From Oopsacas minuta (Eukaryota; Animalia; Porifera), in the NCBI GenBank assembly GCA_024704765.1, contig JAKMXF010000133.1:124001-188000 (forward strand): 64,000 nucleotides of DNA. Reading direction: 5' to 3'. The position numbers and the translations under genes are program-made. The notes below the pieces were generated by a model. The model did no database searches. It was not told the origin of the DNA and worked only from the letters and a program-made list of their open reading frames with translations. This document shows, one piece after another, positions 7,257 through 58,815 of this stretch (positions are counted from its first letter, which is position 1; every line of letters begins with the position of its first letter).

Positions 7257-7933
7257 AAATAAAGCTATTTTTAGTACAAAGAAAGAGATTTGATTGGATA
7301 AAATTGTTAAATAAGGAAATAAGGGAAAATAATCAAAAATAACAAATCAGTGTTTGTACAGAATTCTAATTAGTTATTATTATAAATTCTAGCAAAGAAA
7401 GATAAAATCGAATTTGAATATTCTTAGTCATTCAAAAGTGTTAAAATCGAATTTAAGTCCCTGTTTACCAAAAGGTGTGAAAATATGATTAATCATATGA
7501 TAAATCAGTGTATATGTATTTAATTGAATGTATTGACCAATAGAATTACAGTCTACATCATTACTAATTAAATTACAAACATTCCACCAAAACTAATTAC
7601 ACACATTCATGCAGAATTGGAAAAACTACAATCTGATTGGTTGAAAATACAGGTGTCAAAAGGTGTTAAAATATACACATTAGAAGTTTCCAAATGTCAG
7701 GTACAGAACGAGATGTCACTACGAGTATACATACCAAATTTGGTGACTTAATCTCTAAAGGTGTGAACAGCAGAGCCAAATTAGAGGAAGAAAGGTATCC
7801 AATAGATTGATCCCATGGTATCAAATAGTACACTGAATAACTCAGAAAATGTATAAACACACTAATAACTATAATTGGGAAATAAACAAATAATAATAAT
7901 AATAATAATAATAATAAACAATGGGACAGGAGA

Positions 7934-9826
7934 TTAGAGCATCTGTAGACAGTTGTCCTCCTTCATGTCACCAACTGTTATGTAGCCAGATCGTTCTATA
8001 AATATGCAAGAGGGACGGAATATTTGACACAGTCCATGTCCTGTCTCACAAACTGTTTCCATGAATTTACCAGACAGGTCAAACACTTTGATGGAATTAT
8101 CCCAGAAATCACATATGTATATTCTCTTTTTCTTTGTGATAGGATTATAGAACAGGTTGAAGTTGTATGCTCCTACTATCTGATCCTCTGTGAGTATAGA
8201 CCTTATGAATACTCCTTCTAGAGAGAACACTTGTAGAGGAGAGGGAGATCCTGTGAAGAGACAAACAACACAAGTACCAACAGCCTCCATGTCCTGTAGC
8301 CATGGATACCTGTTAGGTATCTTGGTATGCAGAATAGGATTGAGTGGGTATTCTTGTTCTATATGGAGAGGATCTACCTGCATACGGATGAGACTGGGCT
8401 TAAGAGTCCCCACATACAAATGCTTACTGTTAGAGGAGGTACAACAAGCCTGTGGTATTGAGATGTCACGTTCACGATTCATGCCAGATACATCACCACT
8501 ATCTCTAAATGTTAAGCTGAATTGTGCTAATAAACTTGTATAGCACACGAAAACGAACTGTTTGAAGTATGTCAATGAGACAGGAGTAGTACCTAAATAA
8601 GCATGATGATACGAAGAAAGAGCTGCAAAATCACTAGCTCTGAAGAGTGTGAATGTATCACCGTATCTATCCGCTACTATTACGTTATTCATAACCACAA
8701 TTATACCAGCTGGTGTATCTAATTGGAGACTTCTAACTCCACCTCTGTCAACACCAGATGCTACAGGGATGTTCCTCTCTTCTTTGGGTGGAGCTATCTC
8801 CATGGGATCGTTATGAGTGGTGATGGCAAATGAAGGAATGTCTATTCTGTTGTCGTAAAAGTGACGGATCTTTCTTTGTATTATATCATATATTTCCTTC
8901 AAATACTTATCCTCCTTATTCTTCCTGACCAGATATTCTAGAGACCTAGCGTCTCTGTACAGGAAAGATAGTTCATTGAATGTGAAAGTCACTCTCACCT
9001 CAACACGTGCATAACAATCCTCCATCTTTTTGCATTTCTCTTCTATCCTATCTGCATTCCTGGTTTCCAACTCATCTCTAGCTATCGCATACTCCTTATT
9101 GAGTCTGTTTAGCCTCATGTCATACTCCTGACGTGTGATACCCCCGGGAAGCAGGTCTCTCTTGGATCGATTTACTGGTTTCATGTCTTCCTCTATTTCA
9201 GGATCTACATAGAAAATGAATTCTCCCTCAATCAAGTGTGTCATTCCCTCCCTCATGCAATACGAACACCAAGGTTCTGGAATAGGATATGTCCTCATCT
9301 TTAAGATCTCTGCCTTCAGTCTCAGTCTCAGAGATTCGTATCTCTTTACTATCACACTCTCGATCGGTTTAGGGAGTTTAGGGTCCATACAATTCTGAAT
9401 TCTAAGAATCTTTTCCTCAGCTGTCTCCTTCCACATGATGAGACCGTTTAGGGAGTATAGGGAAGGTTCTGCTAGAGTCCTCTCTATATAGTAGAGGCTG
9501 TCTTTGACATCAATAGGGAGGTAGTTATCGATGATTAGTAAGGATATTTTGTGTAAATGCTGGTCGTATCGCTCCTGGAATGAATCTTTGAGAGGGACAG
9601 GAAGTATTTTACTGGAGATTACAGATTCATAATCTTTGTAGAGAGGTGATAACTTGTTAAGAATTCTACCGCCCATGTTTACGTCATATTTCGCTATAAA
9701 TCTTTCCATTTTATTGAGGATATTTGATATCCTAACAATATTCCTGTATTCCTGTATTATTCCGGTATATCGTTCCTTCTCAGTTTCTGAAGGTGTTACC
9801 TGGCTCATGTTTGTTGCCATTTCCAA
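7934..9826 (-). CDS. Intronless helical-domain + NHL-type beta-propeller protein, copy 1 (630 aa)
   Basis: C-terminal third has NHL-like blades (LDTPAGIIVVMNNVIVADRYG; IYICDFWDNSIKVFDLSGKF; FRPSCIFIERSGYITVGD). Paralogous to 47187..49247 and 56563..58590. Confidence 0.85.
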   Translation of the reverse strand: MEMATNMSQVTPSETEKERYTGIIQEYRNIVRISNILNKMERFIAKYDVNMGGRILNKLSPLYKDYESVISSKILPVPLKDSFQERYDQHLHKISLLIIDNYLPIDVKDSLYYIERTLAEPSLYSLNGLIMWKETAEEKILRIQNCMDPKLPKPIESVIVKRYESLRLRLKAEILKMRTYPIPEPWCSYCMREGMTHLIEGEFIFYVDPEIEEDMKPVNRSKRDLLPGGITRQEYDMRLNRLNKEYAIARDELETRNADRIEEKCKKMEDCYARVEVRVTFTFNELSFLYRDARSLEYLVRKNKEDKYLKEIYDIIQRKIRHFYDNRIDIPSFAITTHNDPMEIAPPKEERNIPVASGVDRGGVRSLQLDTPAGIIVVMNNVIVADRYGDTFTLFRASDFAALSSYHHAYLGTTPVSLTYFKQFVFVCYTSLLAQFSLTFRDSGDVSGMNRERDISIPQACCTSSNSKHLYVGTLKPSLIRMQVDPLHIEQEYPLNPILHTKIPNRYPWLQDMEAVGTCVVCLFTGSPSPLQVFSLEGVFIRSILTEDQIVGAYNFNLFYNPITKKKRIYICDFWDNSIKVFDLSGKFMETVCETGHGLCQIFRPSCIFIERSGYITVGDMKEDNCLQML

Positions 9827-10272
9827 TATTCTTAGTCTTCAGTTCTTTTATAGAAATATCTCTTCTTTAGAATTTGTATTAGAATTAAGTATTACTTTCT
9901 ATGTGAAGTAATGTGTTTCATAATGTGGCTTAATAATAGACACAATTAGCGACACAATTACATAATTGTTTCATTATACAACTCCTAATATATTCATATT
10001 TATTACAAAATGAGGGTAGAACTTTATTGACACCATAAATGGCGCCTAAAATTGTCTGAATTAAACAAACAAACAAATGAATTGAATAAGCAAATAAACA
10101 AATAATTAAAGTAAGTGTTTGTTGATGTAAATAATGTTCTAATTATAGAAATAAGAAATATACAAATATCAATAAATAATTATTCCAGACCTGAATATGA
10201 TTGAGAAGTGTCAAGTAAACAACAAACAACAAACAACAAATACATAAAAACATATAAAAAGTGAAATAGGGG

Positions 10273-22200: not shown

Positions 22201-25200
22201 TACTGAAATAAACAATAATACAAATTCACATAAATTGTGAGAGACAAATAAACAAATATTTATGAATAACATGGATAAAGCATAGGTGTGAAAAGATGAA
22301 TATTTAAGTGGTAAGGTATACTTTATATTGCTCCGTTTCATGGATTAGTTGTTCTCTTAAGTCAAACCAATATTTTCTTTCATTAATTAAGCGAGAAATG
22401 TCCCGCTTAAGACAAATAAGTTCTTGACGAGATTTGGCGCGAAATTTCTTCGTAGCTTTTTGGCGGTTCAACTTGTCGCGGACATTTCTAATATGCACTT
22501 TGACCTCTTCTGGGATATCTGAACTGTCTAGAATCCGAAGAAGCGCGGTTCGACCCTTTAGCGCGGCTAATTTATTAGTGTCGATGAGTTCTGGAATTTG
22601 GGCGGGTAATAATCTCCACCAATTTGGGATTAAAATGGCTTGTATACTTCCAAGTTGTTGTTCTGAAAGGTAAACACTCATTTGTTTTGTTGTTGTTATT
22701 GTTGTTAGAAAATATTGAAATTGATTAGTATAAACAAGTTGAAAGTTTTTATAGGAAAAATTCTGCATGATAATAATCACGCGTAAAGTAAACAACAACA
22801 AACAGGAAACTACAGTCAATAGAAACCATATTCACTGATCAGAGGACATTTAAGTGAGAATAAATCTAAAAATAGAATTCATGATTCATTTTAGCGCCCA
22901 AATTCAGACTTATTTTATGCGCCAAATAATCAATGAAGTGGGTAAATCAGCCACTATTTTCACACCTAACAAAGCATCAACATTTTGATGTAGTTATTTT
23001 TAGAACGGTGATATTAATATTAATATATATGAGAAAGCAATTACTAATAACTGTAAGGGATAAATCTTGACGAAACTGCGACAAAATATGAAACTACAAG
23101 TGGCACAATCGAAGACACATTGCGAATATGTAATCACAAATAAGTAATGATATATCTCTGTAATTCATTTATAAATATTACCAATCACGGATATACAACA
23201 ACCATTTTGGGGTCATATTTGGCCCATTTTAGCCTCCGATTGAGACAAAATACGCCAAACACAGGAGAAGGGTTGCTATGTGTGTGGAATGTGATCAGAC
23301 CCCTAGAGAGGAGGAGAGGAGGCCATTAGGCCTGTTCCTCGATCTCTAGGGGTCCAAAAATATTGCATCGAATGTAATGAGTATAAAATGGAGAGAGGGA
23401 AATTCCAAATTACATCATTAAAATTACGAACAATGAAATTAGCAATTAATAATATCAATATGAAACTATAATGTTATGGATATGGAACTTAATCAGTGCT
23501 ATATTTATATGCGATAAATCAAATTACAGAATAAGCAAATGAAGAATAATCATATAATATTTAAGGGAAACTTTCTTGGAATAGTCAGTAGAAATGTGGA
23601 ATAAAGTGTCGCTTTATTATTGCCACAAATATCCGGGACACTTTTTGAATAAACAATATGTTATATGATATGTCAATAAACACAAACAACAATCAATAAG
23701 CAAAACAAATTCTTTTGTAATTATTATATTTTAAGATCGAAAATTTGGGGATTAGCTATTCATGAAGGCGATTCAGGGACGACAGGTGGGACTCCAGAGG
23801 GTCTATTTCAGTCTATAGGTTAGGAGGGAGTCTAAGGTGTAAAATGGTATAGGTACACAGGTGGAAAGGGTTGGGAACCGCTCCCAATATGGATTTACAA
23901 TCCTGTCGAAAAGTGGCTTGTGCTCTCTGATTTAAAGTGACACCTTAACAGGCATAATATTTCAATTTAGTGTCAGCTAGGTGGTTTACCCTCTTAGAGG
24001 TGGCGTGTTGATAATCCACCAAAATTCCAGAATTGTACTTTGAATAAAAACAGACTCCACGAGTCTTTGTTAAGTAATTAATATCTTGGATTGTTATAAA
24101 TTTAGTATCTTTTAGTTATATTACCAAAGTGTTAAGAGTTCATAAATATCCAGAGCTAATAGTTCAAATCTTTTGGAAGTGAAGTGTGAACTCAAAATTA
24201 GAACAACAAATATATTTGTAAATAATATTATAGAAAATTATGTAAACAAAAATATATGAAAATATATCAATGAACCATGGACAATTGGAGAAGGTGTTAT
24301 CAAAGAATTCATAGGGCAAATATGGTTCCTAACTGAGTAGGGAGGGGAGGGCAATTCCTATGAGCCCCTTTTTCTCATAAAACAGCTGATAATGTATAGA
24401 AAAAGGTGTGAAATTGTACAAAATAATAAATTTCATATATGACTCACCTCCCAATAGTGTCAGGCAGAACATCTAAGTAAATATCATTTATGTATAGTTC
24501 TTGTAAATAATGAAGCTGTGTGAGGTGTTCTGGAACTCTAAACAACAATAAACAACAATAAACAACAATAATACAATGACTAACAAAGGTTTATACTGGA
24601 CCAATCAATTCACATTCTCAGATAGGTGTTAAACCATTATGTAAATTGGACCAATAAAATATCAGGGTAACCCTCAAATCTGATAGGTCAGACACACTAT
24701 CTCAGAGAATATGTGAATAATTCGCTTGGAAATTTACATATGCTTAATTCACACCATTTTACACACTCATATCAAATTTTGTAGCTGTTACCACTTCCTC
24801 AATAATGAATAAACAAACAAACAAACAAATAAATAAACAAAGTATATACTTACCTGCCAAGAGGATTCACAGATAATTCCAAAGCTTCAAGAAAGGCGCA
24901 ATGTTGTATCGTATTAGGAAGACAGGTGAGAGCTAAAACAAATAAACAAACAAGTAAACAAATAACTGAAGATATTTGTTATATTTTATTAATAAAATTA
25001 ACCATGAATAAACGAGGATTTTAAAATATGGACCATGGATAATTGAAGAAAATATCTTTAAAAGTGGCACACCCATTTAACACCTAATCATATCCATTAT
25101 TAACAATAAATATATAAGAGAAATGTTGATAAATAAATTCTACAAAATATGACAAATTAATAGATCAAAAGGTGTCTGGGAGGATTTCCATTTATGGAAG

Positions 25201-40113: not shown

Positions 40114-41854
40114 ATGGCATCAAAAGATGTGTTAGATAAAATTCACGGGTCTTTACTGGGTCTTGCAATTTGTGATGCAATTGGAACTACAGTAGAGACC
40201 CTCCCTCCTGGCTCATTTGAGCCAATTACAGACATGGTTGGGGGCGGGAAATTCAATGTTTTACCAGGACAATGGACAGACGACACATCTATGGCACTAT
40301 GTGTCGCGGAAAGTGTCGTGGAATGTCAAGGATATAACCCGGTAGATCAGCTGATGAGATTTTGTTCTTGGTATGTAGGATGGCATTTCAATTGTTGTGG
40401 AGAACTAATTGATATTGGTGAGTTATTTTTAGTAACAAATAAATCAACCATGGATACTTGAGAAGTGTAGATATATCTTGAGCCACAATGTGTCGAGAGA
40501 GTAAGTGTTATTGACACAATAGTGGCTCAAATATTTCAGGAAATTTAGCCCATTTATCCATAGTCCAGTAGTGTAAATGTTAACATATTGCAAACTGCCA
40601 GTAAAATCTCGTTAATTAGATTAACATAACGATTTATTAGTTCCAGTTTAAACTATTTATTAGTTCCACTTTAACTTGCTACACATTTCACTACAGAGCA
40701 CATATCTTATTGGATAAAACTATTATCCATGGTTATTCTAGGAAAAACTGTCAGGAAGTCTCTTGAGGAGTTCAAGAAGACTGCTACCCCCTATCCCGGT
40801 CCAACCTCTGAACGGGCCGCTGGGAATGGTAGTCTGATGAGATTGTGTCCTCTGCCACTTGCCTACGCGAGTAATCCGGAACTAGCAATGGAACTATCAG
40901 CTAGACACTCCCGTACTACACATGGCGCTCAAATAGCAATAGATGCGTGTAGGTATTTTGCAGGTTTGTGCCATAATACCACTTGACACTTTCATAGTGG
41001 CATCGTGCCCAATTGGCAGGGGTTTATCTAGGTGTTAAAAGTGCCAACGGGGGAGAGACCCTTATTTGTCGAGGATCATTTGTCACGAGAGAGTAATGAT
41101 CCCTGTGTATTCTACAGGAATTCTGATTGGTTGTATTCAAGGAGAAAGCAAAGAAAAACTGCTGTCAGAAAATTATAGTCCTATAGGTTTAGGATACTGG
41201 CAGAAACATGTGCCATCTCCAGAGGTGTCAAAAGTGGCACAAGGAAGCTATAAAACGAAAGAACCACCTGATATAAAAGCGACAGGATTCGTAGTCGACA
41301 CATTAGAGGCTGCTTTATGGGGTTTTTATCAAACGGATACTTTTAAAAGTGGCTGTCTTATGGTGTCAAATTTGGGTGATGATTCGGACACTGTTGGTGC
41401 AGTTTATGGGCAGATAGCTGGCGCGTTTTATGGCACAAGTGGCATACCTAAGGAATGGAGGGATCGTGTTTATTATCGGACACTTATCGAGGTGTTAAGT
41501 GGTGAAATAATGTGTCTCAGTGAGAGGACTAAAAATGCTAATATTCCTGATGATACCAATTATGAAAAAGTTCCATGTCAAATTGAGGTGTTAGGCGCTA
41601 AATATGTCCAAATGAAGATACACGGGTTCACATTTTTGGAAGAAAAGAGTCGCGAATTGGTCAGAAGACTGAAACCATGTCCAAAACAGTTCAAAAACTT
41701 GTCAGAAGTTGATGCCACAATTTCACATATAGAATCTGAATACTTTAAACTGGAAGGAGTGTGTCCAGAACTCTTTAAAGATTTCAAATCGATGTGGTTA
41801 CTTGAGAAAGAAAAGTTGAGTTTAAGAATAGCGAGAAAAGCTTATTTTAATTAG
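40114..41854 (+). CDS. ADP-ribosylglycohydrolase (ARH/DraG family), 3 exons (40114-40417, 40742-40963, 41118-41854)
   Basis: Motifs GSLLGLAICDAIG, GQWTDDTSMAL, AAGNGSLMR and GDDSDTVGAVYGQIAGA; the exons join in phase. Confidence 0.92.
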
Positions 41855-44449: not shown

Positions 44450-44665
44450 GGTAACGTGATATGGTGTATGCTATTGATACTATAGGAGACTCGACTTAAC
44501 AGAGCCACAGGTTAATCGGGTAAAAATGGTCTGCTCCCCGGTGTGGCCCTATTAAACGCAGTCTACAGTATGTGATTATTATCATTTAACAAACAAACAA
44601 ACATATGAAGTAAAGTGAGTATGAACTATTCGTATAACAATAAGGTGTCACAATATGGAACTAAA

Positions 44666-45007: not shown

Positions 45008-45296
45008 TTGTTTTCTATTTGTTTGTTGTTAGTTGTAGCTAATAATAGGTGTCAAAGTTGTAATTAATAATAAGGACACTTTTGAGTGACCCCCCCTCGA
45101 TGGGTCCATTTTCAGAAATGGTCTTTAATAGTTGTACCATTATAGGTGACATGCTTAACAGCAATATGGAATCAAATAGACCCATATGGTGTTGTTAATA
45201 GGTGTCAAAATGTGATTAACCTTTTCATAGTAAATATAACATGAGTAACAAGATCGCGTATAAGTAATCCTAACACTTAAGTAATATGACACTATC

Positions 45297-45806
45297 CTAT
45301 GCAACTCCAAGTTCTTCAGGTGTTGGAATGCCAAGTTCAGTTAGTGTCGGTTTCAGTTCTTGTATAACGTAGTCGTATATTTCAGGGTTACCCCCTGCCT
45401 TGAGTTTGACAGATTCTAGCACCCGAATGGCGGAAGGGAAGTCGCTAAGTCTCCTGCAGGCGTTAAGAACTGAAACTAATATTTTTGGTTCTGGAACCAT
45501 GTCTAAACCGTAGAGTTTATTGTAGCCATTTCGAAGCAACCATTTGTCAATATCTGATTGGTTGAAATAGTCAACCCATTCCTGATCCATTATTTCGTCC
45601 TTTTGTTCTTGAGTAAGTTTTGTGTCGCCAGAAGTGGCAGAAAGTGGTTTATCGGTTGACACCTCTGAGAATGCGCGCTGGAATGTAGTAGCACTCTTTC
45701 CGCGGATTGTATACTGGCGGGTTTGGGCGGGAATACTTATAATTGGGCGCCAAAGTGACACACCCTGAGGAGCAGTTATAATTGGTCGAAGTAATCTAAC
45801 AGCCAT
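45297..45806 (-). CDS. COX5A: Cytochrome c oxidase subunit 5A
   Basis: [78 protein letters not shown]. Confidence 0.95.
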
Positions 45807-46141
45807 TTTCCTCTAAAATATCTCAAACTGGAACTATGAGTAATATATATATTTTCACACCTTAAGTATAAACAAATTCAACCAATAGAATATCAGGCTA
45901 ATAATACTGGGGCAACACTCAAATCTGATAGGTCAATATATCTTATCACCTATCTCAGAGAGTTTATGAGATTTCTCTTAGATATTTGAATTGACACCTA
46001 GATGAATCATATTCCACGCACATACCAAATTCCAAGTTGGTAGTTAACACCAGTTCCTCAAAAAACAAAAAATTGTATACAAGATATATTTTAAGACACA
46101 AATAAACTGTGACACAATTCATATACGGACACAATATGGCA

Positions 46142-49100
46142 CTAGTGGCGGGAGTAAGGAGACCTACTTCTATCCCTCCTACTGTCACTCCTGTACTTGT
46201 CATAGCGGTGCCGGCGTCTACCAGGGGGAGATTGACTAGAAGACGAACTGTACCTCCTTCTTAAACTGGAACTAACACGTTTGTTATCTCTGTTACTAAA
46301 AATAAACATTTAGCAATATCAATGAAACTGGAACTAATTATCAGGTGTTACTTTATGAATATAACCTTCTCTCTCTGCCATAAGCTCGCACTCTCCCTTT
46401 AGTGTGTTTTTGTCTAAACATTGACAAATAAATAATTGACAAAAACATTCTATTTTTAGTAACATTCAGACAAGCGAACCATTGAGATTACCCAACCACT
46501 TTATTCTTGCTTTCTACTGGCTGATCGGATTCTGATCCTAACTCATATTTTGACACGTCTTCATTCGACTAGTAAACAACAACAAATAAACAACAACAAA
46601 TAGTCGTAGATACATCTAGAGTGTGAATTGGTACAATTTTGCCCCCAACGGTGCAAAAACATTTTAATAATTCAATTAGCTAAGAACATGTGTTGACTAA
46701 TTTCTAGCAAATATTAGAAAATACACTAAAAGATGTAAATATGATTAAGTGAAGGTGTGAAAATGTTATTATAACCGGATATGTATGTCAATACATCCCT
46801 CGACGAATAAATTTTAGAGTTTTCGTTACTGACACACCGCTAGTGTTTATGGAATTTATATTATCACCTCTTCACTGTCTAGATTGTATTTAGAGAGATC
46901 GCCTTCACTTGGAGTATCTCTATTCTCTCGATTCTATAAATAGAAATGTAAATTTCATAAGTGTGATGTATACTCAAAACGGTGACGAAAGATTTATCAT
47001 ATGATAGACAAATTCATGAGCATCTGTAGAGCCAAATTAGAGGAAGAAAGGTATCCAATAGATTGATCCCATGGTATCAAATAGTACCATGAATAACTCA
47101 GAAAATGTATAAACACACTAACCACTATAATTGGGAAATAAACAACAAATAATAATAATAATAATAATAAACAATGGGACAGGAGATTAGAGCCTCTGTA
47201 GACAGTTGTCCTCCTTCATGTCACCAACTGTAACATAGCCAGAGCCTCCTATAAATATGCAAGAGGGACGGAATATTTGACACAGTCCATGTCCTGTCTC
47301 ACAAACTGTTTCTATGAATTTACCAGTCAAGTCAAACACTTTGATGGAATTATCCCAGAAATCACATATGTATACTCTGAATTCATCTGTGATAGGATTA
47401 AAGAACAGGTCGAAGTTGTATGCTCCTACTATCTGATCCTCTGTGAGTATGGACCTTATGAGTTCTCCTTCTAAAGAGAAGATTTGTAGAGGAGAGGGAG
47501 ATCCTGTGAAGAGACATACAACACAATTCTTATCAGCCTTCATGTCCTGTAGCCATGGATACCTGTTGGGTATCTTGGTATGCAGGATAGGATTGAGTGG
47601 GCACTCTTGTTCTATACAGAGAAGATCTACCTGCATACGGATGAGACTGGGCTTAAGAGTCCCCACATACAAATGGTTACTGTTAGAGGAGGTACAACAA
47701 GCCTGTGGTATTGAGATGTGGTGTACATGATTTATGATAGATATATATTTACTATCTTCCCATGTTAAGCTGAATTGTACTAATAAACTTGTATAGCATA
47801 CGAATAAGGACTGTTTGAAGTATGTCAATGAGACAGGAGTAGGAGCTAAATAAGGGAAAAGACCCCAATACCTAGCTACAAGACCATGAGCTCTGTAGAC
47901 TGTGACTCTATCACCGTATCTATCCGCTACTATTACGTTATTCTTAACCACAATTATACCAGCTGGTGTATCTAATTGCCAAAGAGCTTCTCCACCTCTA
48001 TCAACACCAGATGCCACAGGGATGTTCCTCTCATCTTTGGGTGGAGCTACAGCCATGGGATTGCTACGAGTGGTGATAGCAAATGAAGGAATGTTTATTC
48101 TGTTGTCGTAATAGTGACGGATTGTTCTTTGTAAATTATCATATATTTTCTTCAAATCCTTATCCTCCTTATTCTTCCTGACGAGATATTTTAGTGACCT
48201 AGCGTCTCTGTACAGGAAAGATAGTTCATTAAATGTGAAAGTCATCATCTCCTCAACATCTGCATAACAATCCTCCATCTGTTTGCATTTCTCTTCTATC
48301 CTATCTGCATTCCTGGTTTCCAACTCATCTCTAGCTATCGCATACTCCATATTGAGTCTGTTTAGCCTCATGTCATACTCCTGACGTGTGATACCCCCGG
48401 GAAGCAGGTCTCTCTTGGATGGATTCACTGGTTCCATGTCTTCCTCTATTTCAGGATCTACATAGAAAATGAATTCTCCCTCAATCAAGTCTGTCATTCC
48501 CTCCCTCATACAATATGAACACCAAGGTTCTGGAATAGGATAAGTCCTCATCTTTAAGATCTCTGCCTTCAGTCTCAGTCTCAGAGATTCGTATCTCTTT
48601 ATTATCACACTTTCGATTGGTTTTGGGAGTTTAGGGTCTAGACAATTCTCAATTTTATCAATCTTTTCCTCAGCTGTCTCCTTCCACATGATGAGACCGT
48701 TTAGGGAGTATAGGGAAGGTTCTACTAGAGTCCTCTCTATGTAGAAGAGGCTGTCTTTGTATTCAATAGGAAGGCCGTCATCGATGATTAGTAGAGATAT
48801 TTTATGTAAATGCTGGTCGTATCGCTCCTGGAATGAATCTTTGAGAGGGACAGGAAGTATTTTACTGGAGATTACAGATTCATAATCTTTGTAGAGACCT
48901 GATAACTCGTTCACTATTCCAACACCTATGTTTGCGTTATATGGTGCTATAATTCTTTCCATTTCAAAGAGGATATTTGGTATCCTAAAAATATTCTTGT
49001 ACTCCTGCATTATTCCGGTATATCGTTCCTTCGAGGATATGTGTGGTACTGTAGACATTACGGAGGCCTCCTTGCTATTCAGATTTTCCATATCCAACTG

Positions 49101-51588
49101 GGACCCTCTAGACAATTCGGAAATTGCGTCAACGTGAATTTCTTGTAAGATAGCGGACAGCTTTTCCTTTATTCTATTCTCGTACTTCTTCCACATCTTC
49201 TCAGTTTCTGAAGGTGTTACTTGGCTCATGTTTGTTGCCATTTCCAATATTCTTTGTCTTCAGTTCTTTTATAGAAATATCTCTTCTTTAGAATTTGTAT
49301 TAGAATTAAGTATTACTTTCTATGTGAAGTAATGTGTTTCATAATGTGGCTTAATAATAGACACAATTAGCGACACAATTACATAATTGCTTTCTATGAA
49401 ACTGAAATTAAAGTTTAATTAATAGGAAATTTGTATTTGAAAGCAAACAAATTTGTTTCAGTGATTTGTTTACCAAATAGAGTTAATTAAATTATATTCA
49501 GTTTCATAAACAAGGATCAAACTGTCTTTTAAATGGATCCATTTGGCCTCTCTACTTAAAGAGAGGTAATAGGACCCCTTGGACAGAAATAGAACCATTC
49601 AATGTAGATAGTTCCAGGAAATCAAACTAGCACCACTATGATATATTAAAGTCTTTCATATACCTTTTTATTAGATGATGTGTTAACTTTCTTCTTTTTC
49701 CTTCCAAACTATGTAAATACACAAATAATTATAGAACTAACATATAGCAATATGGAACTATGGTATACATAATATGTAAATAAGGTGTTATAATATGAAA
49801 CTATAAACATACATCATCATATTCGCCATCTGATTCTCTCTTGATATACTCTACTTCTTCTCTCTCATTAAAACCTCCTCCAATACCTAGAAATTTCTCA
49901 GAGATTGTGAGAGATATCTCTTAGATATTGGAAACACTTCCTTGATTAATCACATTCCATTCAATAACTGATATTAATTTGTATATCATTTTATCACCTT
50001 TCTCAGATATTTACACATATTCACAATCCACACACACATACACTTTGTTTTGTATTTATACAAATAACAAACATTACTATGTGTCTATCTGATCTCCATG
50101 GTAACACAAAAATGTTAATATTTAATATCACACCTGTACGCTCTTCAACTTTCCCCATTTTCGGATGATCACAGACGTTACATTCCGATCTTCTTGCCCA
50201 GTTTATATTGCTGCACCTAGACACACAAATACACAGAATATTCCTAATAGTTATTATAAATACAGTAAGGACTGTTTTGGGTAGTTTGAAAGGTATCTGG
50301 ACGGTCGTATAATTACAAAATTGGCCTCTTGGTTTCATATTTTGACAATTTGGTCCTCTCCATATGCGTATTAGATATTTTACCATGGATGGTGGATTTA
50401 GTTTGGGCCGCATGCATTTGTCCAAATTTTTGGTGATGTTTGCGTCAGTTGGATCTGGAGCAGGCTGTGAGTTACTGAGAGTATTTAGAACTCACGTTGG
50501 AAGGTGTTAGAATTGGCATTTTCATGTATCATCTAGCTAGATTGGCTTGAGCTGAGAAGACGAGCACTTCAGTAGACTATTTGGATAACTTGTGTGGTGT
50601 TTGATTGGATTCGAGTTGGGTCCGGAGCAGGCTGTGGATTGCTGAGAGTATTTGGATGCAAAACAACAAAAATAAATGAAAATTCCCCGTGAAGGCATGC
50701 ATTCGATCACCAAAAATTGAACTAATGCATGCGCCCCAAACTAAATCTACCATCCATGGTTACATATCTAATAAGAGGGGACATTAATAATAGTTACTCA
50801 CATAGAGCATTGCCAGTCTTCAGCACTGAATAGACCACCACTCTTCTTGGCCGCGTGTCTACCAATCTCACTGCCAACTTTCTTGAGTTTAGGCGCGAAT
50901 TTTGGGCGCGCTAAATGATAAAATAATACAGTAAACTTTGTGTGATAACAAATTGTTCATGACACTCAGTTTCATTTTGTTATAAGCTAAGAAATATTAT
51001 AGCGGGGGAGGTTAATACACACTATGATTGTTAAGCCATTGTTAGTCGTAAGCTCCACCACCAGCATCAAGTTTACCTGTCACGTGAATATTGTCATTAT
51101 TGGAAATTCAATTACACAATATATGTAATAACTAACGCGTGAATAGTAATGACAGACCTCACTTAACACGCTTACCGTATTTCCCCGAATAAGCGCCTCG
51201 GGGCTTATTTTTTCGTGGACATGAAACTCTCGGCGCATATTCAGGAAATACGGTAATTAATATATTTAGAAGCCATTGACATTTCCATGAATTGGTTAAT
51301 ATGTATTATGGTGACGTCATGAAATAATGAGATAGCTTAGGTATACATCATGTGGAACTGAAACAAGATTCTCATTAACAGTGGAGTTTTATGTAAAATT
51401 AAGGTTGACACTTACGGTATCGACATTTGTGGCATTCAGTTCTCCTCGCATAGTTTATATTTTCACACCTGAAAAACAATAACAATAATAATAGTTTGTT
51501 TGTTTGTATATATAAATATATAAATAGTTGTTTACCCTTCTTGAGAACAAATCCAGTCTCCATCCGATATCTTGAATCTGCCAGACAT
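46142..51588 (-). CDS. ZRANB2: Zinc finger Ran-binding domain protein 2 (splicing factor), multi-exon
   Basis: Exons MSGRFKISDGDWICSQEG|CENINYARRTECHKC|..GGLFSAEDWQC|CSNINWARRSECNVC..KVEERT|GIGGGFNEREEVEY..SDGEYDD|FGRKKKK|..RS-rich tail RRDRSRSPYSRH. Confidence 0.93.
47187..49247 (-). CDS. Intronless helical-domain + NHL-type propeller protein, copy 2 (686 aa), in a ZRANB2 intron
   Basis: Paralog of copies 1 and 3; lies in intron 46934-49663. Confidence 0.85.
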   Translation of the reverse strand: MEMATNMSQVTPSETEKMWKKYENRIKEKLSAILQEIHVDAISELSRGSQLDMENLNSKEASVMSTVPHISSKERYTGIMQEYKNIFRIPNILFEMERIIAPYNANIGVGIVNELSGLYKDYESVISSKILPVPLKDSFQERYDQHLHKISLLIIDDGLPIEYKDSLFYIERTLVEPSLYSLNGLIMWKETAEEKIDKIENCLDPKLPKPIESVIIKRYESLRLRLKAEILKMRTYPIPEPWCSYCMREGMTDLIEGEFIFYVDPEIEEDMEPVNPSKRDLLPGGITRQEYDMRLNRLNMEYAIARDELETRNADRIEEKCKQMEDCYADVEEMMTFTFNELSFLYRDARSLKYLVRKNKEDKDLKKIYDNLQRTIRHYYDNRINIPSFAITTRSNPMAVAPPKDERNIPVASGVDRGGEALWQLDTPAGIIVVKNNVIVADRYGDRVTVYRAHGLVARYWGLFPYLAPTPVSLTYFKQSLFVCYTSLLVQFSLTWEDSKYISIINHVHHISIPQACCTSSNSNHLYVGTLKPSLIRMQVDLLCIEQECPLNPILHTKIPNRYPWLQDMKADKNCVVCLFTGSPSPLQIFSLEGELIRSILTEDQIVGAYNFDLFFNPITDEFRVYICDFWDNSIKVFDLTGKFIETVCETGHGLCQIFRPSCIFIGGSGYVTVGDMKEDNCLQRL
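50369..50773. mobile_element. About 400-bp MITE with about 70-bp TIRs and internal direct repeats, in a ZRANB2 intron
   Basis: tattagatat..accatggatggtggatttagtttggg.cgcatgcatt..tttttggtgat recurs inverted at 50703-50773; internal duplicate gg.gcaggctgtg..t.ctgagagtattt. Confidence 0.8.
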
Positions 51589-51962
51589 GAATAATCCAAT
51601 TAACTAATTAAAGACAAATAATATAGAAGCAACACTCCAACACCTTTGGGGGCGATTACTCCAGCGAGTGATTATTCGGCTGAAGGTACAAGTTAGCGTA
51701 TGACGTAGTATAACCGCATTAGAATGGATTACAATAAACAGGGAAAATCCACTTGCAACTGTTCACCTGGATTGAGCAATTTCCCCCTGAATCATAAGCC
51801 AAACCCCTGTAAATATGAACTATTAAGGTATCAGCGGGGCATTAGTCACAGCTGATATCCGAAAATGCGGGACAGTTGGCAAATATGATATATTATTATG
51901 CACATACTTAATATGAGATATAAAGTTTCATTCCGTAAATTTCAAAATAACCAATTGGAAAT

Positions 51963-53585
51963 ATGGGACAGTATTTGGGTCAAACTGTCCACCAAATCGA
52001 GCGTAGTTTCGTGTTAATTGGTAAATCCCGCGACGGGAAAAGCACTTTAGGAAATCTACTAGTGAATCAAGCAAACACTTTTCCTACACACATGCATGAA
52101 GGGGCAAGTGGACTAACTGATAAAGTTAAAACAGTACAGAGTTTCATAAACTCAGCTGATATAGAAGTACAAAATACCAATCCACAGGTTTGGTTCCAGG
52201 TTATGGATCAACCGGGACTAAATGATCCCAGTCACAATCTTGTAAAACACAGTGGGAATCTAATAAAGTGTCTGAAAATGTCAAAAGCTCCAATGTCAAT
52301 CACGTTTGTGATAGTTATAACAGTTGCGGGCTGTTTTTTCCCTCAGGAATCCTTGAAAAATATTTTATCGTTAGCAGAGCAAATGGCAGAAGCTTCTTAT
52401 AGTTTTTTCGCAAACGCTCTAGTCGTACTAACACATAAGGACAAATTACAGGGAAACACTCATGAAGAATTGGACCAAGAATTGAAGGACAAATGCCAGA
52501 GTGAAGAGTGGAAATGGTTACAGTTCTTACTCGACCTCGTAAATAGGAGATATGTGTTTGTGGACGCTCGAAATATAAATAACCCCAACCGGGTGAGTAT
52601 ATTGAAACGCATGTTCAAGTTATCACGACCTACAGTCCGTCTAATGATCCATGGAAATACTCATTTCAAAAGCTCTGAATTTCAAAACTATTTAAATATT
52701 TCTGGGAACTGTCACTTCATAAATATGAAATATATAATCGCACTTCATTTTAACCAAGACTTAAATCTAAACAGAGGACAAAGGAGAGAGATACAACTTG
52801 AAGAAGAGATTGTAAGAGCGGGGATAAAGTTGAAAGAGATAATTCAAGGAATTTCGGTAATTATTGTGCTGATAAGCTTAAAAGATCTTTTCACTGATGA
52901 GACAGAGAGACACATAATGGGAGTACCCGACACTTACGGAATTCACACAATTCTACACAAACAATGGTGGGAACATACTCTAATAGTTTTCAAGATACCA
53001 AACATTCCAAACACAAATCCAAACGATATAATTATTGATAACATAAAGAGGAATATTGCACTTGAAAGGATCGTACAGCAAGCGGGGTTTAGGTACACAT
53101 ATGTTACGGGAGGAGACACGAGGAATATATGTGTACAAAGGATCAATCAGGGGTGTTTGTTGGTGAAGGAACAAAGTGAGGGGCGGGGATACATCGATGG
53201 ATCAGTTATCAGGGAAATGCAGAACTCTATTGAATATTTGGCGAGACATAGAAGTCCTTCGAGGGTGATTGGGTTTCAAAAGACCCCGAATTTAGAAGAA
53301 ATGTATAGAGAAATGACAGAAGTGGAGGGGTTGTTAACAAGAGGGAAATATATCTCATCTAAAATAGCATATTTCATATTGAAACAAATCTCCCCAAATC
53401 TAGCTACATATTCCCAACTGTTCCCATATGATCAGGTGACAAATGAAGAGTTCTATCAAATGTACATAAGCAGTTTAATTGGTTCAGAACAAAATAATGT
53501 AGATCCAGATTGTAGGAGGAGTACTGTGAGTAGCATAGTTACGGAACCAGAGGATCGGAATGCTATTCTAGAGGGCATGCTGTAG
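51963..53585 (+). CDS. Intronless AIG1/GIMAP-family GTPase with a second degenerate GTPase-like domain (540 aa)
   Basis: G1 GKSRDGKS, G3 DQPG, G4 THKD; N-terminal MG (possible myristoylation); full-length paralog of 59982..62324. Confidence 0.88.
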   Translation: MGQYLGQTVHQIERSFVLIGKSRDGKSTLGNLLVNQANTFPTHMHEGASGLTDKVKTVQSFINSADIEVQNTNPQVWFQVMDQPGLNDPSHNLVKHSGNLIKCLKMSKAPMSITFVIVITVAGCFFPQESLKNILSLAEQMAEASYSFFANALVVLTHKDKLQGNTHEELDQELKDKCQSEEWKWLQFLLDLVNRRYVFVDARNINNPNRVSILKRMFKLSRPTVRLMIHGNTHFKSSEFQNYLNISGNCHFINMKYIIALHFNQDLNLNRGQRREIQLEEEIVRAGIKLKEIIQGISVIIVLISLKDLFTDETERHIMGVPDTYGIHTILHKQWWEHTLIVFKIPNIPNTNPNDIIIDNIKRNIALERIVQQAGFRYTYVTGGDTRNICVQRINQGCLLVKEQSEGRGYIDGSVIREMQNSIEYLARHRSPSRVIGFQKTPNLEEMYREMTEVEGLLTRGKYISSKIAYFILKQISPNLATYSQLFPYDQVTNEEFYQMYISSLIGSEQNNVDPDCRRSTVSSIVTEPEDRNAILEGML

Positions 53586-54000
53586 TTTTGTATTATTGTA
53601 TTCCATATAAATTAATTACAAATGTAAGCTCTATTCAGTTCTAGATATATCTTGCTTTATTGTAGCGGTTAGTGTGTTTATACATTTTCTGAGTTATTCA
53701 GGGTATTTACTAGGCAAAACTAGAAAGTGTTAATAAATTTCTAGAAAGGAACTTGGTTTCAGTTCCACACTTGATTTCATATCTCACCATTTATGACGTC
53801 ATCATACAAAATATTCAATTCATGAGAATATTTCATATACTTGTAAATATGTAAATTAACCGAATACGCTCGGGAAAATGTGTCACTTTATGACACCATA
53901 AGGTGCTAAAATCTCGATGTGGGTGCGGGAATTGGTTAAATAGTATTCCTTTTCGTTACGATTGTAACACTTCGGACATAATCGGTTACAGGAAATATCT

Positions 54001-54835
54001 TTGAGTGGAGTGGTAACTAAATTAAATTTTGTACTTTTGATTGCGACAGAGGATATAAGTGTCACTTTGGTGGTGGCAGATGAGAATGTGGCAGTTGACA
54101 CAATTCAATTGAATGGCTCATTTATTGTGGCGGATGAATTTTTCAGGGAATTTCCGAATCTAGAAAATCTGGCGCTCACAGAAGTTATTTTTAGTGATTT
54201 TCCTATTTTTCGCTTTAACTCCAAAATGGTGACTTTGGAATGTGTCGACATAGAGGTGTCAAGTGGCGCTACGGATATTTCTTGGAGTTTCATTGCTGGA
54301 TTGGATTCATTGACTTATGTGAAGTTTATTTGCGAAGCCCAAGTGAACGCCGAAAATTCCCCAAGTGCATTTGTTGGTTTGGATTCTTTGACGAAAATCG
54401 AGTTTGACAAGGTGGATTTTAGTGTCGCGCTGCCATCTGTGTTTGAGACAATAATCACTTTAGTTGAGGTGTCAATAACAAACGCGGGGATTCTAAATTT
54501 AGAATTTATTGCGCCTGAAATTCGTGATGGAATTTTGGAACTAGATTTAACTTCTAATTCTATTAATGAAGAGAGAACAGACAACTTTAATGGTTTCGTG
54601 AATTTGACACGCTTAATATTGGTAGACAATGGGTTCACAAAGTTGGAGAGGGTGCTCTTCCAGGAGATGCAACGCCTTGACACCTTAGATTTGTCTGATA
54701 ATTAAATTCGATCCATCTTAACCGACACATTTTATGCCATTCCTACCATTATGAGTGTTAAAATTGTGAATTCACTGATCACTACTTTGGATTATTCTAT
54801 TTTGGCGCCATTAGTTAATTTGACACTTTTCATGT
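54001..54835 (+). pseudogene. Leucine-rich-repeat gene remnant
   Basis: LRR periodicity (FPNLENLAL, LDLTSNSI, LTRLILVDNGF, LDTLDLSDN). The in-frame TAA at 54703-54705 is followed by more LRR (IRSILTDTF..). No ATG in frame, and the gene is cut off by transposon sequence at about 54840. Confidence 0.75.
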
Positions 54836-54855
54836 ATCCATTGGAGGTCTGCGAG

Positions 54856-56226
54856 CAGTGACGTAGCCAAGGGGGGGCCAGGCCCCGGTTGTCGCACCTA
54901 TTATGGGGCCCACGACCTCACTATTTCAATCTTAGGGGCTGCTGCAAGGGCTTATCCATCCTAAAGAGGGATTCCAAATATACTCTTTTCTAATGGATAC
55001 AGCTACATTACTGCCCTATTATTGTTCAACCATAGCTTTGTAAAATCTCAATAGACATATTTTCGAGTGTTTTTTGTTAATTTCAAATAAGTGCAACCTT
55101 GATTACATCGCTTGAACCTTGTTCTTGTCGACTTCATAAAGGGTGTACCTATAGCATAGGACTTCTTCTCGTTATTGGAAGCAGTGTATTTATTCCTATC
55201 CTCTGGGAAGTTTAATGCCCTGTTCGAGAAAGTTCAAGCGGAACAAAGGCCAGAGAAACAGCCATGCGGCTCAAACGCCTAATTGAAACACGTTGGGTAT
55301 GTCGTTTTGAGGCGATTAAGACTTTCAAAGAGACTTTTGGAGCCCTATTAACTATTGGATCCATTTCTGATGGTGTGCAGCGAGATCGAGCAATAGAGGC
55401 AAGAGGACTTTTTCTTCAGATAATTGAATTTTAATTCGCATTATGCTTAGTGATGTTCAACCATCTTTTCATTATGACGAACGTTTTGTCAAAGACACTT
55501 CAGGATCCTGACCTTGATTTTAGTGCTGCAATGTCATTGATTGATGCAACCATTGAAACTCTTCAGAGTTACAGATCAGAGAAACAGTGGAAAGAAATTT
55601 GGAATGAAGCTCTAACGGTTGAAGATGGTCACGACATCGAAATAAGCAGTTTACCACGAAAAAGAAAGCACAAATTACCTGCTAAACTGTGTTGCCACGA
55701 TCAAGTCTATTCTTGTAAATTACAAAATTTCGGAGGAAGATGTAAGCGAAGAAAGTTCTGAGAAATCGACACATGGAAGATATTCATGACGTTATTGACA
55801 AACTAAGATCACTGAAGGCAGCCTTTCCAGAGTTGTTACGGTTACTAGACATAGCGTTAACTATTGCTGTTAGTAGTGCAGCTTGTGAGCGTTCATTTTC
55901 CTCTCTCAAACGAATGAAGACTTATCTGCGCTCAACCATGAGCCAATTAAGGCTTAATAATCTAGCCATTTTGTCTATAGAAAGCAATATTGCTTCTAGT
56001 CTTCCATTAGAAGTGGTTGTGGACCGGTTTGCTTATCAGCACAAGAATCGCAGGATATGCTTGTCGTGATTAGCAATAGTTTGTAAATCGCTAGAATTAC
56101 TTATTGGATAATATACACTATTATTATCATAGGTGATTGTTTGAATGACTTGTACTGCCAAGAACTAAAAGTGAATTAGTGCTCCAGGTGTGCCCAGGTT
56201 GAGCTCAAGGTCTGGCTACGCCACTG
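54856..56226 (+). mobile_element. Internally deleted hAT transposon with transposase C-terminal remnant
   Basis: TIR CAGTGACGTAGCCA / TGGCTACGCCACTG; perfect 8-bp TSD TCTGCGAG (54848-54855, 56227-56234); hAT dimerisation motif SSAACERSFSSLKRMKTYLRSTM. Confidence 0.95.
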
Positions 56227-56562
56227 TCTGCGAGTACAAAGGTTGGGAACCACTGCTATATGGATTGTCCGTCATTGTATTTATTGATATATGATTAATC
56301 ATATTTTCACGCCTTTTGAGTTAATTATAATATCCTCGAGTTTTTGTTTCAACAAACATTGAAAGTAATAACAACAATAATATTACAAAATATTACTTTC
56401 ATTGAATTTGAAATTTTGAGTTTCATAGAAAGCAATTATGTAATTGTGTCTATTATTAAGCCACATTATGAAACACATTACTTCACATAGAAAGTAATAC
56501 TTAATTCTAATACAAATTCTAAAGAAGAGATATTTCTATAAAAGAACTGAAGACTAAGAATA

Positions 56563-58590
56563 TTGGAAATGGCAACAAACATGAGCCAAGTAACACCTTC
56601 AGAAACTGAGAAGATGTTGAAGGAGTACGAGAATAGAATAAAGGACATGCTGTCCGTTATCCTACAAGAAATTAATGTTAACGCAATATCCGAATTGTCT
56701 GGAGCCTCCGTAGTGTCCACAGAAACACGCGTATCCTTGAAGGAACGATATTACGAAATAATAGAGGAGTACAGGAATATTTTTAGGATACCAAAAATCC
56801 TCTTTGAAATGGAAAGAATTTTTTTAGTGGCATATACCGTAAACATAACTTTTAGAATTCTTGACGAGTTATCAGCTCTCTACAAAGATTTTGAATCTGT
56901 AATCTCCAGTAAAATACTTCCTGTCCCTCTCAAAGATTCATTCCAGGAACGATACGACCAGCATTTACATAAAATATCTTTACTAATCATCGATAACCTC
57001 CTCCCTATTGAATTCAAAGACAGCCTCTACTACATAGAGAGGACTTTAGCAGAACCTTCTCTATACTCCCTAAACGGTCTCATCATGTGGAAGGAGACAG
57101 CTGAGCAAAAGATTGATAAAATTCAGAATCGGATAGTCCCTAAACTCCCAAAACCGATCGAGAGTGTGATAGTAAAGAGATACGAATCTCTGAGATTGAG
57201 ACTGAAGGCAGAGATCTTAAAGATGAGGACTTATCCTATTCCAGAACCTTGGTGTTCAAAATGCATGAGGAAGGGAATGAAATACTTCATTGATGGAGAA
57301 TTCATTTTCTATGTAGATCCTGAAATAGAGGAAGAGATGAAACCAGTGAATCCATCCAAGAGAGACCTGCTTCCCGGGGGTATCACACGTCAGGAGTATG
57401 ACATGAGGCTGAACAGGCTCAATATGGAGTATGCGATAGCTAGAGATGAGTTGGAAACCAGGAATGCAGATAGGATAGAAGAGAAATGCAAATGGATGGA
57501 GGATAAGTATGCACTTGTTGAGGGGGATGTGCCTCTCATATTCAATGAACTAGTTAACCTGTACAGAGACGCTAGGTCACTAGAATATCTCGTCAGGAAG
57601 AATAAGGAGGATAAGGAATTGAAGGATATATATGATTTAATACAAAGAAGGATCCGTCACTATTACGACAACAGAATAAACATTCCTTCATATGCTATCA
57701 CCACTCGTAACGATCCCATGTTGATAGCTCCACCCAAAGAAGAGAGGAACATCCCTGTAGCATCTGGTGTTGATAGAGGTGGAGAAGCTCTTTGGCAATT
57801 AGATACACCAGCTGGTATAATTGCGGTTATGAATAGCGTAATAGTAGCGGATAGATATGGTGATACAGTCACACTCTACAGAGCTACAGATTTTGCAGCT
57901 ACTTATTCGTATCATGATCCTTATTTAGCTACTACTACTCCTGTCTCATTGACATACTTCAAACCGTCCGTATTCGTGTGCTATACAAGTTTAATAGTAC
58001 AATTCAGCATAACATGGGAAGATAGTATGGAGATATTTCGCATGAAACGTGAACACGACATCTCAATACTACAGGCTTGTTGTACCTCCTCTAACAGTAA
58101 CCATTTGTATGTGGGGACTCTTAAGCCTAGTCTCATCCGTATGCAGGTAGATCCTCTCCGTATAGAACAAGAATACCTACTCAATCCTATCCTGCATACC
58201 AAGATACCTAACAGGTATCCATGGCTACAGGACATGAAGGCTGTTGATGATTGTGTTGTATGTCTCTTCACAGGATCTCCCTCTCCTCTACAAAGGTTCT
58301 CTCTAGAAGGAGAACTCATAGAGTCCATACTCACAGAGGATCAGATAGTAGGAGCATACAACTTCAACCTGTTCTATAATCCTATCACAAATGAATTGAG
58401 AATATACATATGCGATTTCTGGGATAATTCCATCAAAGTGTTTGGCCTGTTTGGAGAATTCATAGAAACAGTTTGTGAGACAGGACATGAACTGTGTCAA
58501 ATATTCCGTCCCTCTTGCATATTTATACAACGATCTGGCTATATTACAGTTGGTGACATGAAGGAGGACAACTGTCTACAGATGCTCTAA
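56563..58590 (+). CDS. Intronless helical-domain + NHL-type propeller protein, copy 3 (675 aa)
   Basis: Paralog of copies 1 and 2, opposite orientation, lying between two hAT elements. Confidence 0.85.
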   Translation: MEMATNMSQVTPSETEKMLKEYENRIKDMLSVILQEINVNAISELSGASVVSTETRVSLKERYYEIIEEYRNIFRIPKILFEMERIFLVAYTVNITFRILDELSALYKDFESVISSKILPVPLKDSFQERYDQHLHKISLLIIDNLLPIEFKDSLYYIERTLAEPSLYSLNGLIMWKETAEQKIDKIQNRIVPKLPKPIESVIVKRYESLRLRLKAEILKMRTYPIPEPWCSKCMRKGMKYFIDGEFIFYVDPEIEEEMKPVNPSKRDLLPGGITRQEYDMRLNRLNMEYAIARDELETRNADRIEEKCKWMEDKYALVEGDVPLIFNELVNLYRDARSLEYLVRKNKEDKELKDIYDLIQRRIRHYYDNRINIPSYAITTRNDPMLIAPPKEERNIPVASGVDRGGEALWQLDTPAGIIAVMNSVIVADRYGDTVTLYRATDFAATYSYHDPYLATTTPVSLTYFKPSVFVCYTSLIVQFSITWEDSMEIFRMKREHDISILQACCTSSNSNHLYVGTLKPSLIRMQVDPLRIEQEYLLNPILHTKIPNRYPWLQDMKAVDDCVVCLFTGSPSPLQRFSLEGELIESILTEDQIVGAYNFNLFYNPITNELRIYICDFWDNSIKVFGLFGEFIETVCETGHELCQIFRPSCIFIQRSGYITVGDMKEDNCLQML

Positions 58591-58815
58591 TCTCCTGTCC
58601 CATTGTTTATTATTATTATTATTATTTGTTGTTTATTTCCCAATTATAGTGATTAGTGTGTTTATACATTTTCTGAGTTATTCAGGGTACTATTTGATAC
58701 CATGGGATCAATCTATTGGATACCTTTCTTCCTCTAGTTTGGCTCTGCTGTTCACACTTTTAGAGATTAAGTCACCAAATTTGGTATGTATACTCGTAGT
58801 GACATCTAGTTGTGC

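Follow-up and report, generated by a model that had tools for sequence, protein, structure and literature searches.

A scattered family of intronless NHL-propeller genes in the glass sponge Oopsacas minuta, a candidate recognition repertoire

We analyzed a stretch of 64,000 nucleotides of the Oopsacas minuta genome, called the window here, which corresponds to positions 124001-188000 of contig C133 (JAKMXF010000133.1) in an assembly of 61.5 Mb and 365 contigs. The window carries three intronless genes, copies A, B and C, whose products end in an NHL propeller and which belong to a family of at least 30 loci in this genome. The members combine a variable helical N-terminus, a conserved central domain without known relatives and a propeller on which replacements are concentrated on one face and the rim. 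We conclude that the family probably is a germline-encoded repertoire for cytosolic recognition (a set of sensors with an immune role or directed at symbionts or parasite nucleic acids) that spreads by birth and death. Loci outside the window are named by contig and position.

The three open reading frames (ORFs) had been noted in a preliminary description of the window as intact genes with identical starts, at 7934-9826(-), 47187-49247(-) and 56563-58590(+). They are indeed open and translate as claimed, giving proteins of 628, 684 and 673 amino acids counted from the ATG that have identical beginnings and are collinear over their whole length. The TTG at which each is listed reflects an ORF-listing convention only; the real start is probably the ATG two codons further inside (MATNMSQ...), because the public annotation uses the same ATG and an in-frame TGA lies 18 nt upstream of it. 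Comparison of the window with itself by BLAST bounded the similarity at 7704-9971 for A, 47028-49422 for B and 56398-58814 for C, with no more similarity among the three copies beyond these positions. These bounds agree with the short shared flanks described before (about 140 bp on the 5' side, 160-230 bp on the 3' side), and the (TTA)n run and the flank motifs quoted at the time are present. DNA identity in the body is 89-91% and reaches 98.5-99.4% in the 5' ~170-200 bp. All three copies have an identical 20-nt block with TATAAAAG, which is TATA-like and may be part of a promoter. Copy A is without ~56 amino acids of the variable N-terminal helical region. The family-specific part of C stops near 58738, and 58739-58814 is the beginning of an interspersed repeat, R1. 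The family features of the window are:

7781 to 9971 (-), copy A: promoter-like 5' region 9821-9971; ORF from the ATG at 9820 to the stop at 7934; predicted 3' untranslated region (UTR) with (TTA)n, 7781-7933
47028 to 49422 (-), copy B: ORF from the ATG at 49241 to the stop at 47187; nested in an intron of ZRANB2, on the same strand
56398 to 58814 (+), copy C: ORF from the ATG at 56569 to the stop at 58590
56535 to 56554 (+), and likewise 9835-9854(-) and 49256-49275(-): identical 20-nt block with TATAAAAG, 25-32 nt before the ATG
53659 to 53993 (+), solo 3'-end relic of a fourth family copy: 3' UTR and flank, 92.6% identical to copy C133:81785

A genome search with copy B returned at least 13 near-full-length copies of 86-92% identity, older copies of 70-80% and many fragments, distributed over more than 25 contigs. 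In all, there are at least 30 loci, ~10 of them intact and ~20 broken or partial due to stops, frameshifts or truncations, and about 25 separate 3' ends. The earlier count of three therefore holds for intact ORFs in the window but is an undercount, both for the genome and for the window with its solo relic. Loci form local clusters, with five inside 100 kb on C133 and five on C188. Pairwise dS (synonymous divergence) between copies is ~0.07-0.14, in line with the recent amplification proposed before, and copying took place at the DNA level and included the promoter-like region. One copy, C317:9149-11202, has lost its stop codon and its ORF runs through the (TTA)n as a poly-tyrosine tail.

The C-terminal propeller is well supported. 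The Pfam model PF01436 (NHL) matched single window sequences only below its threshold and some relatives above the cut-off. A profile of 85 family members matched the NHL domains of TRIM71, TRIM2, TRIM3 and Thin with E values of 1e-14 to 1e-16. In an AlphaFold2 (AF2) model of copy B (predicted local distance difference test score, pLDDT, 84; predicted template-modelling score, pTM, 0.72), residues ~426-684, mostly with pLDDT >90, form six blades with 23 strands and an N-terminal closing strand. Foldseek gave target-normalised template-modelling (TM) scores of 0.70-0.74 to the NHL domains of TRIM2, TRIM3, TRIM71 and Mei-P26. The family profile and Foldseek confirm the propeller that had been recognized in the translations.

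The remainder of the protein has no such relatives. Residues 1 to ~130 are helical and variable in length, and two other paralogs have deletions there that differ from the one in A. Conservation is highest in residues ~130-400, where many columns are invariant in both O. minuta and a second assembly that is described below. Modelled alone (pLDDT 83), this central domain of 270 amino acids is predicted to consist of a three-helix bundle, a small beta element around an invariant YPIPEPW...GEFIF and a long helical hairpin. The central and N-terminal ~400 amino acids gave no match in Pfam, NCBIfam, a PDB sequence profile or a protein-language-model atlas; for the central domain, the best Foldseek E values were 0.2 in the PDB and 0.06 in BFVD, and a shape search of the ESM Atlas gave TM scores of at most 0.35. 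A wide VIA-align search returned generic three-helix bundles only, with a Z score of ~10 over 75 residues, under the level that the tool considers meaningful for helical models. An exhaustive profile search with the central domain among 1.84 billion representatives gave 44 hits, and the ten that we looked up were nine ENA assembly contigs and one O. minuta sequence. The lineage restriction that had been considered possible is supported: in these searches, the helical domain had no relatives in sequence or fold outside O. minuta and the ENA assembly contigs.

We found no Pfam match to RING or B-box in the three window proteins and ten relatives, and a RING was not simply missed upstream, because of the in-frame stop 18 nt before the ATG. 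Long helices are present, with no match to TRIM coiled coils in sequence or fold, although monomer models cannot show dimer geometry. These searches and predictions uphold the earlier statement that the N-terminal part lacks RING and B-box and belongs to no known family, but not the CxxC motif noted in it, which is not conserved: we rejected a zinc-binding CxxC since most of the relatives in the other assembly have glycine in place of the first cysteine, and one Oopsacas paralog has valine in place of the second. The proteins have no hydrophobic N-terminus, signal peptide or membrane segment, and no transposase-like domain was found in the ORF. They share with TRIM-NHL proteins (TRIM2, TRIM3, TRIM71/LIN-41, Brat, Mei-P26 and Thin) the C-terminal six-bladed propeller, a long preceding helical region and a cytosolic character, but differ in having no RING, B-box or filamin domain and in an N-terminal part of 400 amino acids that is unrelated to TRIM coiled coils by search. 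In addition, the family is multicopy, intronless and fast-evolving, whereas TRIM-NHL proteins are conserved single-copy regulators. Because RING and B-box are absent, the protein is not a TRIM.

Sequence change among the copies is distributed unevenly along the protein. The pairwise ratio of nonsynonymous to synonymous divergence (dN/dS) is 0.8-1.5 among young intact copies and 0.4-0.5 against two older paralogs, and windowed pN/pS is 0.1-0.4 in conserved blocks of the central domain and 3.7-5.6 at residues 486-515. In tree-based counts, 270 codons are invariant versus 70 expected at the silent rate, and 23 codons carry at least 8 (8-12) replacements versus 1.7 such codons expected. Within the propeller, the a-b and c-d loops average 3.0 replacements per codon and the outer d strands 2.9, versus 0.72 for the b-c and d-a loops (Mann-Whitney P 1e-9), with silent changes equal over these loop and strand classes. 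Since the a-b and c-d loops share one face of a four-stranded blade, the replacements fall predominantly on one side of the propeller and on its rim. For changes private to one copy, omega (dN/dS) is 0.79 overall, falling to 0.59 (P 0.009) in the central domain. Each young copy carries 24-76 private changes; about 4.8% of random substitutions give a stop, and 7-8 of the 13 copies keep their 2-kb ORF. The private-change omega together with the retained ORFs indicates that most intact copies are under selection. The pattern of change fits a sensor or recognition family, as had been suggested.

Comparable patterns are known from the TRIM-B30.2 immune families (primate TRIM5 and TRIM22, fish finTRIM), which are expanded, positively selected and subject to birth and death, with hypervariable loops on their C-terminal recognition domain. 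By analogy, the sponge family would resemble them in germline multigene turnover and in a hypervariable C-terminal recognition surface; it has an NHL propeller instead of B30.2/SPRY and no E3-ligase module, and an immune role is our suggestion here.

Relatives of the long proteins occur in a second assembly. The ENA loci that we inspected all come from sample ERZ25072730, which contains about 100 relatives with ~50% identity, encoded by single ORFs and often arranged in tandem arrays. These proteins have 780-1280 amino acids, with one to several extra helical repeats of ~95 amino acids. A Helitron (Helitron_like_N and PIF1 helicase ORFs, L033:2422-5646, contig ctg83213) lies ~2.8 kb upstream of one of these relatives and is probably incidental. 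Within O. minuta, a protein search with the propeller of copy B returned the long-form loci, followed by at least 70 single-ORF genes of ~400-430 amino acids with 22-33% identity. With hhalign, residues 366-684 of B aligned with this short form at a probability of 99.6% and an E value of 2.7e-24. The short-form genes (~420 amino acids) are like the long ones in being intronless and present in many copies of the same genome and in having a homologous propeller, a closing strand and a C-terminal NCLQ motif. They begin with a coiled coil of ~150 amino acids, the first ~85 profile positions being unaligned, whereas the long form starts with ~365 residues, including the orphan central domain, that have no counterpart in the short form; this domain was found in no other architecture. 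Judged by these alignments, the family represented by the three window copies is the intronless long form of the O. minuta NHL-propeller genes and a distinct branch of a larger propeller expansion. In the literature library that we searched, no paper joins O. minuta and NHL or describes this family, and the O. minuta genome paper does not mention NHL, TRIM or intronless families (PMC10280926).

The preliminary description had interpreted the shared unit as a discrete cassette moving as a DNA unit. The flanks of the window copies contain the following host exons and repeats:

50021 to 51599 (-), ZRANB2 RanBP2-type zinc-finger exons, upstream of B: within the ORFs 50021-50425 and 51399-51599, read from their translations
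46166 to 46936 (-), ZRANB2 downstream exons: 46868-46936, 46491-46568, 46368-46412 and 46166-46297
55300 to 56226 (+), 3' part of a hAT-type element: at least 8 genomic copies with 88-97% identity, clean 3' end exactly at 56226
58815 to 59784 (+), high-copy ~1-kb element: 131 first-look candidates in the genome, inserted in R1 exactly at the end of the similarity between A and C
7386 to 7780 (no strand assigned), interspersed repeat R1: ~400 bp, hundreds of genomic matches

The genomic contexts of B and C had been correctly described. Copy B is inside a ZRANB2 intron, on the same strand, between the zinc-finger exons and the exons for the acidic and arginine/serine-rich (RS-rich) parts; the 3' exons were placed in the window with the tail of a public fusion model. 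Copy C lies between hAT elements, with a Dimer_Tnp_hAT match at 55773-56069 (E 7e-15) on one side and a hAT-like motif at 59214-59450 on the other.

We aligned 13 copies together with 1.5 kb of flank and compared the flanks all against all. The core common to all 13 begins ~210-260 bp ahead of the ATG, ends ~150 bp past the stop and includes the TATAAAAG block and the (TTA)n. Outside this core the copies have no common end. At least three upstream and at least three downstream flank types occur, and pairs share anything from no extra flank to 1.6 kb of it, in patterns that are nested and mosaic. Copy A and a copy on C317 have 1.6 kb upstream in common (90% identity), A and C188:506865 have 700 bp of extra flank in common, C and C188:506865 have 690 bp downstream, and B and C188:611163 have 625 bp, which in the window is ZRANB2 intron sequence. 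C188:506865 is thus a mosaic with the upstream flank of A and the downstream flank of C. The ~1-kb element is inserted at the same place behind C and behind C188:506865, which shows that the insertion was inherited by duplication. The downstream flank of B matches that of a copy on C277 at 70-81%, and the matching part contains the ZRANB2 exon 46868-46936, which lies ~90 bp past B; the C277 locus encodes the same exon of 22 residues with 80% amino acid identity. Hence, host sequence was co-duplicated with the family copy.

The abrupt ends of similarity among A, B and C coincide with insertions of transposable elements (TEs), namely the hAT element, the ~1-kb element and R1. The hAT end at 56226 is 171 bp upstream of C and removes the upstream flank that C and copy C133:81785 have in common. 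The ~1-kb element contains a hAT-like transposase remnant and a very common internal subfamily of 475 bp. R1, which has CCAAT-like motifs in both orientations, adjoins the 3' UTR of many copies, A among them, and the extra 3' similarity between A and C exists because R1 abuts both. A repeat search including the flanks found no terminal inverted or direct repeats pairing the ends of any of the three copies and no long terminal repeat (LTR), and no poly(A) follows the 3' flank, where the similarity goes on past the microsatellite. These results bear out the reported lack of terminal inverted repeats (TIRs) and poly(A); target-site duplications were likewise not seen, by eye, at the ends of similarity.

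The evidence does not support a discrete cassette, given the lack of fixed ends, the shared flanks of variable length (0.2-1.6 kb), the ZRANB2 exon at C277 and the coincidence of the sharp ends with TE insertions. The evidence leans toward the ordinary segmental duplications that the preliminary description had named as the contrary case, although the segments are short, ~2.4-4.5 kb, and not long. Families of ordinary segmental or tandem duplicates with gene conversion are alike in their variable extents, local clusters, mosaics, pseudogenes and co-duplicated neighbouring sequence and TEs; the differences are that here the segments are unusually short and widely scattered and that the non-coding ends are more conserved than the coding sequence. 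The spread is consistent with birth-and-death evolution by small segmental duplications and gene conversion, with no mobile element. More generally, apparent cassette ends can arise from TE insertions in the flanks of ordinary duplicates.

Exchange among the copies is visible in the alignment. In a four-gamete test on 168 informative biallelic sites, 47% of the pairs fail, with neighbouring sites exceeding shuffled ones in compatibility by a small margin only (P 0.025). Five copies on C133 have the same two small deletions and a 5' region of 97-99% identity, yet their further-upstream flanks are of different types, which points to local homogenisation. The non-coding ends (95-99% identity on the 5' side, 90-98% in the 3' UTR) are more conserved than the coding body (83-96%). 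Any of three explanations could suffice for this difference: constraint on regulatory sequence, conversion acting preferentially on the ends, or conversion that diversifies the body. A bolder version, which we consider quite unlikely, is a germline diversification system in which intact genes are re-patterned by short conversion tracts from the ~20 decayed copies acting as donors. The conserved ends would serve as homology anchors, and the same ectopic repair would occasionally paste whole units of 2.4-4.5 kb into new sites, such as the ZRANB2 intron. Such a donor reservoir would explain why the coding sequence, including its silent sites (dS ~0.09), is more diverged than the promoter-like region and UTR (1-5%), and also the four-gamete failures and the scattering without transposon hallmarks. 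It would resemble the mosaics of chicken immunoglobulin genes or of variant surface glycoproteins (VSGs).

We propose the following working for a recognition repertoire. Segments of ~2.4-4.5 kb with the gene, its promoter-like region, the 3' UTR and variable flank are duplicated locally and to other contigs, after which the copies exchange sequence by ectopic recombination or gene conversion. TE insertions erode the flanks, and about two thirds of the loci decay. In the protein, the variable N-terminus and the conserved orphan domain, a probable scaffold, oligomerisation or effector part, carry the propeller. The hypervariable propeller face may bind diverse targets, such as RNA or protein of microbes, viruses or mobile elements, and the conserved domain may give a common output by assembly or signalling.

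Several points weigh against this reading. Pairwise dN/dS is ~1 overall among young copies, and the private changes of B and C have an omega of 1.2-1.35, so that these two individually look relaxed or positively selected; some of the seemingly intact copies may therefore be drifting. The site counts were made by parsimony on one tree, and with recombining copies the changes are over-counted. Only 2 sites pass Bonferroni correction, and the region 486-515 has a P of 0.056 on the tree. The assignment of codons to faces and loops comes from the DSSP string of a predicted model and not from coordinates. Transcription, start site and 3' end of the copies are predicted from the sequence. The reading also does not account for how a 3.5-kb segment came to occupy the ZRANB2 intron. 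Finally, the nearest genes to C are two intronless AIG1/GIMAP-like GTPases that flank it (51963-53585 and 59982-62324, (+)), but among the ~39 AIG1-like loci in the genome none, apart from those in this window and on contig C35, lies beside a family copy. We therefore rejected a 'defence island' linkage, and the genomic context lends little support to an immune role.

Among the alternatives, we regard it as unlikely that the unit is a genuine mobile DNA cassette that moves by a non-classical route, such as hAT-, Helitron- or MITE-like (miniature inverted-repeat transposable element) capture with transduplication, reintegration of circular DNA or templated insertion at breaks. The scatter over more than 25 contigs, the copy that occupies most of a ZRANB2 intron and the roughly equal pairwise distances of the young copies would all suit such a carrier, as would the transposon-like excess of conservation in the non-coding ends (95-99%) over the ORF (83-96%). 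However, there are no TIRs, LTRs, poly(A) or common termini, the length of shared flank varies by pair and takes in unique host sequence, even a ZRANB2 exon, and copies cluster locally and encode no transposase-like domain. The position of C between hAT-type remnants, the abutment of many copies by R1 and the Helitron 2.8 kb from one relative in the other assembly would also speak for a carrier, but the TE edges are insertions in the flanks, some of them inherited by later duplicates, and not carrier boundaries. Processed retrogenes made from mRNA are extremely improbable. They would be intronless and dispersed, with short shared flanks and perhaps a (TTA)n in the 3' flank, as observed, but the shared unit reaches ~150-230 bp upstream of the ATG and includes a TATA-like block, similarity continues beyond the microsatellite with no poly(A), and many pairs have non-transcribed flank and TEs in common. 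These three features rule out a retrocopy origin; in addition, we found no intron-bearing parent, and the relatives in the other assembly are also single ORFs.

The two remaining alternatives concern the protein. The genes could encode ordinary TRIM-NHL-like regulators that bind RNA or protein and act post-transcriptionally, with the variable positions being unconstrained surface. Homology of the propeller to the NHL domains with which TRIM71, Brat and Mei-P26 bind RNA, the strong conservation of the b-c/d-a loop face, which could be a real binding site, and the overall omega of 0.7-1 are compatible with this idea. It is nevertheless improbable, because each of 23 codons carries 8-12 replacements where full neutrality predicts ~2.3 and the a-b loops show ~3 times more replacement than silent change per site; moreover, core regulators do not usually show such high turnover, with ~20 dead copies, or expand independently on a large scale as in the second assembly, and RING and B-box are missing. 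Very unlikely, in our judgement, is a selfish or decaying repeat, in which the ORF would be a driver-like gene or would have been carried by a now extinct element, and most copies would be neutral relics. Against it stand the 7-8 of 13 young copies that keep a 2-kb ORF despite 24-76 private changes each, the excess of invariant codons, the low private-change omega of the central domain (0.59) and the persistence of the same architecture in a second genome at ~50% identity; for it speak the pairwise dN/dS of ~1, the majority of broken loci, the roughly equidistant young copies and a domain without a known relative.

To our knowledge, sponges have no adaptive immunity, and the recognition of microbes, viruses or mobile DNA by glass sponges is poorly understood. 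A cytosolic family that combines a constant orphan domain with a fast-diversifying propeller face is a concrete candidate for this task, and the short-form NHL genes of O. minuta are its counterpart as a second family. The orphan domain of 270 amino acids, with a confident predicted model and no known fold relative, is a target for structural and functional study.

The nested copies also affect gene annotation. The public model LOD99_16047 (793 amino acids) is a chimera in which a splice joins residues 1-671 of copy B to the ZRANB2 3' exons for the acidic and RS-rich parts (47187-49241 and 46010-46936, (-)), and further family members are fused in public models to ACSBG2-, TRAF4- and FN3-like proteins. 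Nested family copies can thus yield chimeric public gene models.

Several other features of the window deserve mention. The solo relic at 53659-53993 begins 74 nt past the stop of the first AIG1-like gene (51963-53585). Either a family copy has been lost or replaced at this site, or its 3' end now serves the GTPase gene. An ORF of 234 amino acids with leucine-rich repeats (LRR_8, E 1e-9) follows at 54001-54705 (+), between this gene and the hAT remnant. At its end, the second AIG1-like gene has a long array of tandem DTPLIPEDAQLISY-like units (61.7-62.3 kb). Two ORFs unrelated to the NHL family encode a GT41/TPR (OGT-like) protein at 25157-27292 (-) and an ADP-ribosylglycohydrolase-like protein at 41066-41854 (+).

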